This document shows, piece by piece, positions 23,123 to 63,452 of a stretch of 64,000 nt of DNA (its first letter is position 1; each line of letters starts with the position of its first letter). Under the pieces are notes generated by a model. It saw only the letters and a program-made list of their open reading frames with translations. It had not been told where the DNA came from and did not search any database. Source of the DNA: Octopus bimaculoides (taxonomy: Eukaryota); contig NC_068987.1 in the NCBI RefSeq assembly GCF_001194135.2, positions 104,516,833-104,580,832 of the forward strand, written 5' to 3'. Made by a program: the position numbers and the translations under genes.

Positions 23123-24483
23123 CACACATACACACATATATATATCTATACCTATGTATGTATGTATGTATGTATGTATGTATGTATGTATGTATGTATG
23201 TATGTATGTATGTATGGATAGATAGGTAGATAGGTAGATAGATAGATAGATAGATAGATAGATAGATAGATAGATAGATAGATAGACAGATAGACAAACC
23301 GACAGATAATTAGATATTTGTAGTTCTTAACCTCTTTGTGGATGCAAAAGAAAAGCTCTTAGACTAAAGGTAGTTCAAAGAAGAGGCGATAAAGCAAAGT
23401 TGACAGGGTGAGCAACGGATAGTAGGAGAGCCTGCAATGACAATATTAAACCCCACGAACGGCTGCTTTCGCAGCAGCTCCGAGAAGAGCCACAAAACTC
23501 ACCACACTTTTATAGTTAGAGACCGACTTCCAGAAAGCTGTAAGGAATCCTTCTAGTTGCATCATTCCGTCATCGTAAAACTATTCGAAGTAAATGGAGG
23601 ATAGAAAGGGCTGGTCAATCGTCAAAGAACCAACAAAGAACTGAAGAGTTTACTTAACAAACTGAGGGTAAGAATATGCTTTATATGTTGCTTGAAAAGG
23701 AGCTGGACTCAAATCTTGTGGAACAATAGACTGCCAATGCAATCCACACGAATAGTCTCTGAATACCTAGGATTTAAGCTACACAGAGCACCTGGGACAC
23801 TTCTCATCCAAACCAACACCAAAGAATTTGCCAATCACATTTGGGAGCACCGTTTTTATAGGAATGAGTGTTCATGAGCAAGTCTACAGAGTACCCTAAT
23901 CTTATCCAAAAGGAGTTTCTGCATTGTATATCTGTATATTGGTAATTATGTTTTATTTTGTGTTATTTATCTACCTATATGCTTTACATCTATCTATCTA
24001 TCTATCTATCTATCTATCTATCTATCTATCTATCTATCTATCTACCCCCCCCCTCTCTCTCTCTCTATATATATATATATATATATATATATATATATGC
24101 AATGCTTATAACGATAGAGAATATGGAAACTGGTACAACCTCAAAATTCACTCGCTTTTATTTTACAATATCATACAGCATATTTTTACGACGACCTACA
24201 CGTGTTTCCACTGCACAGAGTATGAGCAGTTGCATATCCAAGTAGTCATAGATGTTAAATACCAATCGATACCGTTAGCCGTATCCTGGAACATAACTGA
24301 GAGCTACCACGGTATCCGTCCGGATAATAAATCCCTTTAAACTCTCTCTCTCTCTCTCTCTCTCTCACACACACACACGAATGCACGCACATACACACAC
24401 ACACGCATGCGCGCGCGCGCACACACGTATGTATGTATGTATGTATGTATGTATGTATGTATGTATGTATGTATGTATGTATG

Positions 24484-24833
24484 CGTGTCTCTTCTATCTT
24501 TTAATTATTGAGATGAAGTTAACACAGACAAATTCACAGTTGGAACTTGAGAAAAATCTTGCATATTTTTACTGTTCCACTCACAGATTGGACTTGCAAT
24601 GTACGGATCAGCCAGTCAGTTTCTCTTCCTGAAAATCCCAGTTTATCCAGATTTTCCTTTAAGCTTTTACTAGCAAAACCTAGTGCTCCAATTATTATCG
24701 GTATAAATATGAATTCATAGTCTGGATATAGAAGTTGGAGATTTCGAAGTAGTTGTCCTTAGATATGCTCTTTTTCTTCGATTTTCAAAGAGATATTTAT
24801 ATCTGCAGGGCAGCTAACCTCTATGATAGTACA
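24484..24833 (-). mobile_element. 5'-truncated R4/Dong element (end of RLE domain plus 3' UTR) embedded in (TACA)n
   Basis: The reverse complement aligns with 62995-63395 (GAGGTTAGCTGCCCTGCAGATATAAATAT...AGAAGAGAC). (ATGT)n arrays lie on both sides (24428-24483, 24834-24905). Confidence 0.9.
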
Positions 24834-26689
24834 TATGTATGTATGCATGTATGTATGCATGTATGTATGTATGTATGTATGTATGTATGTATGTATGTAT
24901 GTATGTGCGCATCCGTGTTTGTGTTTGTATGTGTTAGAAAGCGGAGTAAGTAACTTTGTTTGATAAACGTACACATATACGTTTGCATGTTTGTGTAAGA
25001 TTTAATAGGAGGATTTCTCCCTGTAATTTAATTGTGTGTATAGTCATTGAATCATCTGCATTGAACCATTCTGGTTATTTTCATTAGATGTGCTTATATA
25101 AATAAGCTCGTGTTACTCTTCTATTTTTTGCTAAGTATACATAAGAAAAGAAGACTGGTGGTCGTTGTTTTTGTTATTGCCGTTGTTGTTCTGTTTTATA
25201 TATATTCATTAATATTTCTTTCAATGCCGACAATGAATTTCGGTTTGGGGGAGAAACAGGGTACGAGGCTGAGAGGCTTATGAACAGCATAAATGGCATG
25301 AAGACAGGAAAAAAGAAAAAGGTGAGGAAGGGAAAGAGAGAGGGGATGACAGAGAGAGAGAGAGAGAGAGAGAGAGAGAGAGAGAGAGAGAGAGAGAGAG
25401 AGAGAGAGAGAGAGGGAAAGCAGGAAAGAGAGGGGGAGAGTATGGATATATGAAGGCTCGTATGGGGAAAGGGATGAAGAGAAAGGAATATATGGACAAG
25501 TTTTCGTATGAGTCTGTATCTGTGTTTGTGTGCGAACATATATGTATGTATGCATGTATGTATGTGTATGTATGTATGTATGTATGTATATATATATACA
25601 TATGTGGTGAAGCAACTGTTGCTGACCCCTTAATTATGTTTATATATATATATATATATATATATACATATACATGTATAAATACATATAAATATATATA
25701 TATATTTATATGTGCACACATACACACATACACACACGCACGCACACACGCGCACACACACACACACACACACACACACACACACACACACACACACACA
25801 TCATGCTTTTACATTAGTTTGCCGAAGCGTGAGTTGCTGCGGAGTGAACCCCTTATCTGAGTTTATAATCTAAGCATATGCAATCGCCTCGCTCACACTC
25901 ACTCCTTCACTCAGACACACATAAACGCACGCGTGCGCATTGCATACACACTTAGACACTTACACACACACACACACACACACACACACATGTACATACG
26001 TAAAGTGTGAGTAAGAAATATAGGTAGGTACATAGAGAGAGAGAGAGAGAGAGAGAGAGAGAGAGAGAGAGAGAGAGAGAGAGAGAGAGAGAGAGAGAGA
26101 GAGAGAGAGAGAGAGAGAGAGAGAGAGAGATTTGACAGAGGCGTAAGAGAAGAAAATGAATTACTGGATGGAACAAAAGAGATATTCAACCGGTCGTAAA
26201 TTGGTTTTATCTTAACAGCGTAAGTAACTCTCATAATGATTTTAGCTATGTATACACAATTCTATTCACAGAATTGTGCGGTAAACCAAGCCTTAGTGTT
26301 TCTCAAATGATTGTTAACTTACAAATAGTTTTTATTCCTCTTATTGTCCTCATGATTCAATCTTGTCAATAAGTACATGCCCCTCTGCTATTTCTCTTTA
26401 ACATTATCGTGTTTATTTAAGCATCTATTCGCTCGCTGTACTCTACGGTATTGTAGTGAAGTGATTATAGTTGACGTCTTATTGATTCCTTCATTTATAT
26501 TCATTGATGTTTCCATTCTCTCAGTCAATTAGTACTGGACAACCCCTCGACGGGACATTTTATTCGGCTCCAGACAACTGTGGTTGAATTTAGTCTACAT
26601 CTGAAACCCTTAAATCAGCAAGAAATTCATACTGAAAATGACTTGCTTATATATATGTGTGTGTGTGTGTGTGTGTGTGTGTGTGTTAT

Positions 26690-61020: not shown

Positions 61021-63395
61021 TATAATAGTGCTGTCAACATCGGACGTGCAGGTGTAGGGGACCGTTTAAAAAGTCCGTTTTGAACGCCTTCTAGAAATAT
61101 GCTAACTTCTCTAACCTAAATCGGTAACTGTTTTATTTCTCCAACAATTAATAAAAGAAAAACATTTTACTCGCCAACAGATTTTAAAATATACATCTAC
61201 ACCACGTGGGATCTCGCCAACACGATTATGGCTGAAACTAGCACCATCACAAATGAAACTAACAACGTGACCACCGATGAAAACAGAACTACTTCGCCAG
61301 TAAGTTATTTAAGAAGACGTAAGTACTCTTCTCTACATGGACTCAACAACTAAATCAAGATTTACTTTGGTGTCTATGAAAAAGCCTTCAATCGGATAGA
61401 TGACGCGGTTAAGACAATACTGGGACGAAGTTCATTCATCCCAACTTAAATACCTTCACGAAGAAACAGCTCCGACAACAAGCTTCTTTTGTGAAGCACA
61501 AATCAACTGGTCCTTGATCCTCCCAAAACACTGAAAATGGATCAAAATCTGTCAGAAGCGGCGTAAAAAATAATATAAACAAATCACCGCTCCCGCCATC
61601 ACTAAATTCGAGTGTGTCTCCAAATTCAGCTGACTCAGTAGCGAAGAGTGCGGAATACATCCAACTCCAAAACATGAAAAAATTTGGCTACTTTCTCGAA
61701 GCTTTTGTTGAGCATCAGACTATTCCCAACAAGAGCGAGAAAAAACCCGACCGATCTAATAATTAAGGTTATCAACGATGTTGCTGGAGAGCACATGGAA
61801 TCGTGTGATGTTAATTACTGGAATATTAATACACTTATATACACAGCCGCTATTACTCTTAAAGAACATCTTGGAGAAATCTACAGGGAACAAAGTAACG
61901 AAATTACTAAACGGAAACAACCTAGATGGAAAACAAAACTTGAAGAAAACATCAACAACGTGCGCCGCCATATTGGATGGTTAACTAGAACAATAAAATG
62001 TAAGGAGAAAAATGAGCCTACACCTCACCAACTCTACCTTAGACAAAAATTAATGAGACTTTCTGGTAACTCTTCACTCCGAACTCTTGAAGGAAAACTA
62101 ATCACTTTAAAATATGAACTCAGGACGATGAGCGAGAAACTCCGCTATCGCATGCGAATCTTTGAGCGAGCCAGTATCAATCGCAAGCCTGCTTTCAACC
62201 CACGAGTATTATACAGAGAGATGAGGAAGCTCCCTGCCAAGAAGATCTACAATTATTCTGGTCAAAAATTTGAAACGAGAAGAAGGATTTCAACCAGAAT
62301 GCATCATGGTTAAATACAACTGAGAGAAAATTCTATACCAACACTAACAGTAAAATATACAAAATTGATGCAGAAACCTTCGCTATAGCAGTAGGCAAAC
62401 TGCAGAATGGAAGGCAGCTGGAAGGGACCTAATAGTTGGATATTGGTACAAGAAGCTGGCATTTTAAAGAAACCAATTGATACGTATTTTCAAAAGGACT
62501 ATGGAAGGTCAGACTGATACACCACATTGGTTTGCTACAGCAAGGGCCAATCCTGTTGCCAAAAATGAAATCATCGAGATGGCAGGAAACAACAGGCCCA
62601 TTGCTTGCCTAAACATTATATACAAACTGTACACAAGTTACTTCAACCAATTCTTCCAGGACCACATCACACTTTCAAGGCTATGCATTTGCAATCCAGG
62701 AACAGGAGATTGCCACGAAATATCTGGTGAACAAGAGAGACAATGACGCTCTTGTAATCCCAAGGTGCGAACACTACCCGCCTATGCCGCACGATGTTGT
62801 TGCTAAAACAGTTTACAATGCCATCCGCAAAGCAGACTGTCCTGAAATAAACTTAGGAAATCCCTCTGTTATGGGATACATTCATAAACACCAACTCAAG
62901 GAATACTGGTGGAATATTACCATCAAAACTTCTGTCAAACGTAAGCATAACAGGCCGGATATTGTTGTTTGGGACAGAGGGGCAAAAGTAGGTACCATGA
63001 TAGAGGTTAGCTGCCCTGCAGATATAAATATCCCTATGAAAATGAAAAGAAAAGAGGATATCTATGGACAACTGCTTCGAAACCTCCAGCTTTTATATCC
63101 AGACTATGAATTCATATTCATACCGATAATAATTGAAGCACCAGATTTTGTTAGTAAATGCTTAAAGGAGAATCTGGATAAACTGAGATTTTGAGAAAGA
63201 GAAACTGACCGGCTGATTCGTACACTGTAAGTGCAATCTGTGAGTGGAACAGTAAAGATATGCAAAACTTTTCTCAAGTTCCAAATGTGAATTTGTCTGT
63301 GTTAACTTCATTCCACAGATGGAGCCTTGTATTTTGATGGAAACCGACTCCCTCCTCAGTGGAAGATTTATAATGATTACAAAATAGAAGAGACG
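61021..63395 (+). mobile_element. R4/Dong-clade non-LTR retrotransposon with both ends present, RT core and zinc knuckle deleted, multiply frameshifted
   Basis: ATG at 61228. Myb-like N-terminus WTQQLNQDLLWC...RLRQYWDEVH...TFTKKQLRQQA; PRWKTKLEENI; RT start WYKKL...PHWFATAR...NRPIACLNIIYKLYT; FAIQEQEIATKYL; RLE HDVVAK...YWWNITIKT...HNRPDIVVWD...IEVSCPAD.N...K.DIYGQL; SGTVKICKTFLKF*. (TACA)n lies on both sides. Confidence 0.9.
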
Positions 63396-63452
63396 TACAT
63401 ACATACATACATACATACATACATACATACATACATACATACATACATACAT

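Follow-up and report, generated by a model that had tools for sequence, protein, structure and literature searches.

Retrotransposons of the R4/Dong group, which lack long terminal repeats (non-LTR elements), insert into ribosomal DNA (rDNA) or into microsatellites; Dong itself inserts into (TAA)n repeats (PMC7998251). Octopus genomes contain many Dong-R4 elements with recent activity, and the papers that describe them mention no target (PMC13282606, PMC8967140). Here we analyze a 64,000-nucleotide stretch of Octopus bimaculoides DNA (assembly GCF_001194135.2, contig NC_068987.1, positions 104,516,833 to 104,580,832; hereafter, the window, within which all window positions are given). The window carries two dead copies of one non-LTR retrotransposon family, each enclosed by arrays of the tetranucleotide TACA. 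As judged from its reverse transcriptase (RT), the family belongs to a lineage that is sister to Dong inside the R4 clade. TACA targeting by this family is supported as a preference and is not absolute.

Several other long interspersed elements (LINEs) resemble this family in their target or in their enzymes. Microsatellite-specific HERO families and Togen, found in (TG)n, are LINEs with a restriction-like endonuclease (RLE) that also target microsatellites (PMC4640811). Waldo elements of the R1 clade (WaldoAg1/2, WaldoFs1) insert into ACAY repeats, which include ACAT, i.e., TACA (PMC3812793). R4 of Ascaris and Parascaris is likewise site-specific and has the same order of domains, but it occupies one site in 28S rDNA.

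No description of a tetranucleotide- or TACA-specific Dong lineage was found in the searchable full-text literature, a scope that leaves Repbase and Dfam notes outside. Microsatellite targeting by R4/Dong elements is already known. The tetranucleotide target of a Dong-type lineage is a modest extension of this. Site-specific RLE LINEs are under development as DNA insertion tools, so natural changes of target within one clade are useful. Intact and closely related proteins whose elements end in different four-letter repeats make a tractable comparison for finding the part of the protein or of the RNA that sets the target.

Two copies of one family between TACA arrays

Copy 1 is a 5'-truncated Dong-type element on the minus strand, extending from 24487 to about 24835 (blastn, alignment, translation and tblastn). 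Copy 2, on the plus strand at 61019-63395, is 5'-complete and defective, as judged from translation, from tblastn with intact relatives and from comparison with the related sequences L001, L003 and P0002. A preliminary description of this DNA had located both copies correctly, and only their ends had to be shifted slightly. In a blastn search of copy 2 against the window, positions 62989-63311 matched 24835-24513 of copy 1 with 89.5% identity over 323 bp; the same search also picked up 63835-63915, a weakly matching sequence of another family. A third copy of the family was found in the window neither by blastn nor by tblastn. The alignment of the two copies contains a 57-bp indel in the 3' untranslated region (UTR), namely a deletion in copy 1 relative to copy 2, and then reaches the common terminus ATAGAAGAGAC.

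The window assembly includes 13 runs of N, and all of them fall outside the two copies and the arrays that flank them. The contiguous block 14439-27169 contains copy 1 with its arrays, and the block 59099-64000 contains copy 2 with its own. Because about 6.0 kb of estimated N separate the two, their spacing of 38 kb and their opposite strands depend on scaffolding; no other claim made here does.

Both copies have TACA arrays on both sides, and all four arrays read TACA on the sense strand of the element. The 3' array of copy 1 (24427-24483, minus strand; TGTA on the plus strand) has 14 units and may be the tail of the element, the downstream half of a target array, or both. Its 5' array (24834-24906, minus strand) has the polarity of the element and includes TGCA variants. 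The 5' array of copy 2 (60811-61018, plus strand, the tract extending to 61024) is a degenerate mixture of TACA, TATA and CACA with a perfect (TACA)10 at 60979-61018, and its 3' array is (TACA)14 at 63396-63452 on the plus strand. According to Tandem Repeats Finder (TRF), the purity of both 3' arrays is 100%, whereas that of the 5' arrays is 94% for copy 1 and 71% for copy 2. The shared terminus is followed by ACGCA and (TACA)13 in copy 1 and by G and (TACA)14 in copy 2. Thus the alignment and TRF bear out the preliminary claim of two related copies with one 3' terminus and sense-strand TACA on both sides.

In copy 1 the coding part is reduced to the C-terminal half of an endonuclease domain, which contains one internal stop; the 3' UTR follows, with the terminus GATAGAAGAGAC. 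Copy 1 is 56% identical (tblastn) to residues 1035-1132 of L006, an intact relative. The first residues in its translation are ...IIEVSCPAD (...IIEVSCPADINI...), which lie between the catalytic RPD and E motifs, and its 5' junction shows a GTAC microhomology. The truncation inside the RLE coding region, together with a directly abutting TACA array, had been described correctly. Since copy 1 is truncated inside the open reading frame (ORF), its 5' TACA array is not part of the element.

The background was measured as the presence of a (TACA)4-like 16-mer ending within 6 nt upstream, for every window position and strand. By this measure, only 0.8% of the window positions on a given strand are preceded by a sense TACA array. 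At this rate the chance that copies 1 and 2 both have a 5' TACA flank is about 6e-5. With two further copies, both from read assemblies, the family tally is a sense TACA array at the 5' side in three of four copies (copy 1, copy 2 and L003), two of these three being truncated inside the ORF. The chance of such a tally is about 5e-7, if backgrounds are assumed to be similar. In L003 (Logan SRR11869385) the truncation falls in the linker, and both flanks are ACAT arrays: at the 5' junction ACATACATACATACATACATACA is followed by AAAAGAC..., and at the 3' junction ...AAAATAAGAGAT is followed by GCATACATACATACATACATA. The targeting of TACA proposed in the preliminary description is therefore supported as a preference, 5' TACA being far commoner than in the background, and relatives of the family show parallel patterns.

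About 21 TACA array loci of both polarities are present in 58 kb of the window. An abundance of this kind would suit an explanation in which (TACA)n is just the 3' tail of an element that inserts at random, TACA at the 5' side being a coincidence in a repeat-rich genome; the non-repeat 5' flank of the fourth family copy, L023, would suit it too. However, the background of 0.8% at the 5' junction is to be compared with three of four copies, two of them truncated inside the ORF, and the same pattern recurs in the relatives L006, L008 and L014. We therefore consider this explanation highly improbable.

It was also suggested previously that the family may help to spread TACA arrays, and this suggestion we reject for the window. 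Only four of the approximately 21 arrays touch the family, and the sequences upstream of the others are unrelated to the 3' end of the element. The same numbers bear on a stronger version, in which every insertion brings a TACA tail, later copies land in it and the family becomes the main source of TACA. The purity of the 3' arrays, compared with that of the 5' arrays, agrees with that version, and so do the head-to-tail tandems formed by relatives (see below). Yet none of the remaining arrays is preceded by an element 3' end, and the window has no further copy of the family. This version thus seems improbable to us, and the insertion preference of the family does not explain the abundance of TACA arrays. 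Dong-R4 insertions in cephalopod-like genomes are non-random and interrupt TACA arrays, which bears on microsatellite markers, on repeat masking and on the reading of element "hotspots".

Relationship to Dong and predicted fold of the endonuclease

A protein search with the nuclease domain yielded 51 homologues, the best of which, P0001, is 73% identical; all of them are encoded on short metagenome or read-assembly contigs. The contigs of the relatives were obtained by contig look-up (L002) and by a scan of metagenome contigs (L005-L022); some of these relatives are nearly full-length and others intact. No relatives were found among bacterial and archaeal genome contigs, and a family-specific 21-mer is absent from viral contigs. 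Five relatives (L006, L007, L008, L011 and L015) are intact, with uninterrupted ORFs of 1133-1202 amino acids (aa). Like Dong, they have the RLE-type R4/Dong architecture: a single ORF with an RT, a CCHC (gag-knuckle) linker and a C-terminal PD-(D/E)XK endonuclease. The CRLC...H...C knuckle is seen in L001, P0002 and others. In the 1133-aa ORF of L006, Pfam recognizes RVT_1 (E 4e-26) and no other domain. Among PDB sequences R2 proteins match L006 best (E 1e-27 to 1e-20), and the match covers the RT and the linker.

The layout of copy 2 (plus strand throughout) follows from comparison with these relatives. A 5' UTR of about 210 nt (61019-61229) precedes the likely start ATG at 61230, and tblastn with intact relatives reveals remnants of the N-terminal domain at 61338-61502. 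Positions 61678-62671 correspond to residues 117-459 of L006 and include the N-terminal region and the first RT motifs (NNRPIACLNIIYKLYTS). The linker and the endonuclease occupy 62673-63287 (62673-63284 matching L006 residues 901-1132 in tblastn), the stop codon is at 63288-63290, and the 3' UTR extends to 63395. The restriction-like endonuclease domain itself (62900-63290), identified by alignment and by its homologues, has the PD-(D/E)XK pattern YWWN...NRPDIVVWD...IEVSCPAD...K and is interrupted by two in-frame stops. An internal deletion of about 1.3 kb (L006 aa 460-900) has removed most of the RT and the thumb; L003 does not have it. The deletion junction, near 62671-62673, falls on a short GACCAC ("DH") stretch common to both sides (62668-62673), which suggests a microhomology-mediated event or a template jump. 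Compared with L001 and P0002, the CCHC knuckle of copy 2 is partly deleted, and there are several frameshifts and stops. Pfam gave nothing significant for the window fragments because they are too short or too degraded, and searching proteins with the N-terminal region of copy 2 (189 aa) returned no match.

For RT trees we used 16 of the 31 sequences in supplement S5B of PMC5678591, representing R2, R8, R9, R4, Dong, CRE, HERO, NeSL and Utopia; R1-clade references are not among the 16. All trees are distance-based neighbor-joining (NJ) trees. The 87-aa RT fragment preserved in the window matches Dong_Bm (E 5e-11), DongAa (E 2e-9) and Ascaris R4 (E 9e-9), with E > 0.03 for every other clade, and is 46% identical to L006 and 43% to L002-B. 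For L002-B, RT identity is highest with Bombyx Dong (37%) and falls to 34% with DongAa, 28% with Ascaris R4, 19-24% with R2, HERO, NeSL and Utopia, and 14% with CRE1. L002-B, Dong and R4 group together in 200/200 NJ bootstraps. With five more relatives in the tree, all new loci form one clade (100/100), which has Dong as its sister (99/100) and lies inside the Dong+R4 group (100/100).

Dong elements (Bombyx mori Dong, DongAg, DongAa, DongBg) are thus the closest RT references, with 34-37% identity and a sister position at 99-100% bootstrap, whereas R4, which joins Dong and the new loci in one clade with 100% bootstrap, reaches only about 28%. The RT of HERO, NeSL and Utopia is about 20-23% identical and falls outside the Dong/R4 group; the three HERO references (21-22%) form a separate clade. 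Waldo differs in having an N-terminal endonuclease of the apurinic/apyrimidinic (APE) type and in belonging to the R1 clade, while here the nuclease is a C-terminal PD-(D/E)XK one and the RT groups with Dong/R4 in a tree that includes no R1 reference. Any resemblance to Waldo would be convergence on the same target. The attribution to R4/Dong with an RLE, made in the preliminary description, is borne out by the RT matches, the NJ trees and the predicted fold.

The fold was predicted for the nuclease domain of P0001 using AlphaFold (AF2), with a predicted local distance difference test score (pLDDT) of 82 and a predicted template-modelling score (pTM) of 0.78. In a comparison with known structures, the best matches of this model are R2 proteins (9dou, 9nl2, 9nl3 and 8gh6; E 1e-6 to 3e-4, query TM 0.68-0.70), and PD-(D/E)XK cap-snatching nucleases rank next. 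The C-terminal domain of this relative is therefore predicted to fold like the R2 restriction-like endonuclease. A profile search with the nuclease domain against the PDB gave no R2 match by sequence, and the kinship emerged only by fold comparison. R2, with solved structures from Bombyx, zebra finch and turtle, thus comes first both in the fold comparison of the endonuclease and, among PDB sequences, for the RT and linker. It differs in targeting 28S rDNA and in having N-terminal zinc fingers and a Myb domain.

In the present lineage neither of these N-terminal features is detected by sequence. R4/Dong elements are described as lacking N-terminal zinc fingers and as having a divergent Myb/SANT-like N-terminal domain, for whose detection HHpred was needed (PMC7998251). 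What the alignment does reveal is a conserved N-terminal domain of about 70 aa: SYRRNRDYS..F.WTYELN.DLY.C...GYM.RLK..WD.IHPE.

Target repeats of the lineage and possible mechanism

Relatives outside the family also lie in microsatellites. L006 (47% identical, on a JGI contig) is located between (CATA)26 and (ACAT)28. In a sister group the repeat is (TTAC)n: it stands on both sides of L008, abuts L014, which is truncated inside the nuclease domain, and is present at the 5' side of L007, L011 and L015 and at the 3' end of L009, L010, L016 and L018. In L007 and L002, elements form head-to-tail tandems joined by (TTAC)n. The nuclease-domain tree splits the NACA-tailed elements from the TTAC-tailed ones in 187/200 bootstraps. 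The flanks of the family, of L006 and of the TTAC group thus show that the whole lineage inserts, in a single polarity, into the microsatellite that matches it. Dong behaves similarly: its microsatellite insertions have a constant orientation and end in a tail of that repeat, and its copies are often 5'-truncated. Its target and tail, however, are (TAA)n, while those of the present lineage, which forms its own clade outside Bombyx and Aedes Dong, are TACA, GACA, CA-like or TTAC; (TAA)n was seen at no junction examined.

Several observations weigh against TACA targeting or limit the evidence for it. In the fourth family copy, L023 (Logan SRR11869394, 1-1016), the truncation lies in the nuclease domain, the 5' flank is unique sequence and TACA is present on neither side; the tail is of CA type (ACCCCTCACACACACGCACAC...), the 3' end being ...TGAAAAGAC followed by ACCCCTCACACACACGCACACAC. 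This exception means that we deal with a preference, with a looser target, or with flanks that changed later. The terminus of L004 (56% identical) is ACATACATACA followed by (GACA)n, and the tail of L024 (62% identical) is a CA/ACAY-like tract, ACACATGCACACAC...; hence the recognized unit may be looser than TACA. A Myb/SANT-like match for the N-terminal domain was not detectable in profile and hidden Markov model searches against PDB and Pfam. Finally, the family sample is small, and two of its copies are on short read-assembly contigs that end inside repeats. Evidence for the clade and for the insertion preference is solid, whereas that on copy number (n = 4) is thin.

The tails of L023, L024 and L004 could mean that the real target is any CA-rich repeat of the (NACA)n or ACAY type, TACA being simply the commonest such array in the genome. 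TACA arrays of the window are often compound with CA tracts, which fits. On the other hand, three of four family copies and L006 are in pure TACA on both sides, though the window has no fewer (CA)n arrays than TACA arrays, and the CA tract of L023 could be a mutated or compound array. A target as loose as this appears to us rather doubtful.

Despite these observations, it is likely that the family integrates preferentially into pre-existing (TACA)n, always with TACA on the sense strand, and that R2-like priming is the mechanism. The mechanism is modelled on R2, whose complexes, captured as target-primed reverse transcription begins, rank first in the fold comparison. By this analogy, the protein would bind a TACA array and nick its (TGTA)n strand. 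The freed 3' end would pair with (UACA)n units at the RNA's own 3' terminus, which could be acquired by read-through into the downstream repeat, and would prime reverse transcription. Abortive synthesis would produce 5'-truncated copies. Of the original array, a remnant would stay upstream of the insertion, and the downstream part would merge with the new tail. The 3' junctions have variable extra bases (G, ACG, G) and no fixed repeat register, which fits priming at variable positions within the repeat.

The polarity of insertion and the 5' truncation are observed directly; strand-specific cleavage of (TACA)n is inferred by analogy with R2. TACA may be read by the endonuclease or by an N-terminal DNA-binding domain, and pairing of the tail with the target may play a role as well. 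If pairing played the leading role, the nuclease could be weakly specific or non-specific: the (UACA)n tail of the RNA would pair with any matching nicked array, and the target would be inherited via the tail. Variation of tail units among close relatives (TACA, GACA, CA-like) would be natural under such inheritance, as would the variable junction bases and the tandems, the latter being insertions into the tails of earlier copies. Against it, the tail unit tracks the protein phylogeny (NACA versus TTAC), although inheritance of the RNA tail would yield this too. Moreover, R2-type proteins, including the fold matches 8gh6 and 9dou, position their nuclease via DNA-binding domains, and an N-terminal Myb-like domain has been proposed for R4/Dong targeting (PMC7998251). 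We treat targeting by pairing as a possible but not a likely alternative to recognition of TACA by the protein.

A broader scenario can be put forward only tentatively. The elements may form a so far undescribed lineage, sister to Dong, that occurs in DNA of cephalopod-like and other aquatic animals. In it, the target would have shifted from (TAA)n to tetranucleotides and then split by branch into (TACA)n/(GACA)n/CA-like and (TTAC)n. The unit would be encoded by the protein, probably by its N-terminal domain, and the RGWCGTG motif described below would be an internal promoter with a start at or inside the repeat. If so, the lineage would represent a natural series of re-targeted R2-like integrases.

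Terminal motifs and other repeats

The motif GGACGTG at 61042-61048 of the window (plus strand) is conserved near the 5' end of full-length relatives as RGWCGTG. Within 480 nt, made up of the initial 60 nt from each of eight 5' ends, it occurs five times, versus 0.05 expected. GGACGTG or AGACGTG lies 14-24 nt inside the 5' junction in four of eight full-length relatives. Outside the window the sites are L006 136-142, L008 119-125, L002 1533-1539 and 1560-1566, and L011 81-87, where the sequence is GGATGTG. RGWCGTG equals the consensus of the downstream promoter element in internal promoters of Drosophila LINEs. The motif may place the start of transcription at or inside the target repeat. Its reading as a 5'-end hairpin was dropped, as GGACGTG is conserved and its pairing partners are not. 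No Rfam match to an R2-type 5' ribozyme resembling that of hepatitis delta virus (HDV), or to any other RNA family, reached the gathering score in the whole window, though covariance models can miss divergent HDV-like folds. A permissive Rfam scan of 60900-61500 (E up to 10) returned only spurious "miRNA" matches to microsatellites.

A conserved 3' terminal block, …gatttcttgttgaaatc…tgtaaatggt…, is common to the TTAC-type relatives and contains a small inverted repeat immediately 5' of the tail (L009 2690-2770; L010 3670-3750; L008 4740-4820; L002 9250-9345 and 9660-9770). This block could be a protein-binding element of the 3' UTR. The 3' end of the window family looks unlike it. In L002, an unrelated LINE fragment with a jockey/CR1-like RT motif (CSILGPLLFLIYMNDL) is located at 133-1098, directly 5' of the TTAC-type element L002-A.

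Two fragments at the window ends belong to other Dong-type families. The first, at 1-572 on the minus strand, includes the thumb and linker (38-47% identity to relatives) and continues beyond the window start; its 5' side shows no microsatellite. The second, at 63747-64000 on the plus strand, is a nuclease-domain fragment similar to P0046/P0047. It is cut by the window end and has no TACA at its 5' side. Several TACA arrays, whether linked to an element or not, end in TACGT(A/G)… (6273-6362, 47698-47725, 24427 and 63452). A tRNA-derived sequence resembling a short interspersed element (SINE), …gcccaaggtgccacgcagtgggactgaa…cttaccacacagccac…, was noticed at about 830-990 of the window (minus strand) and at 1-100 of L023, which hints that the window and the Logan runs are cephalopod; such sequences are typical of octopus genomes.

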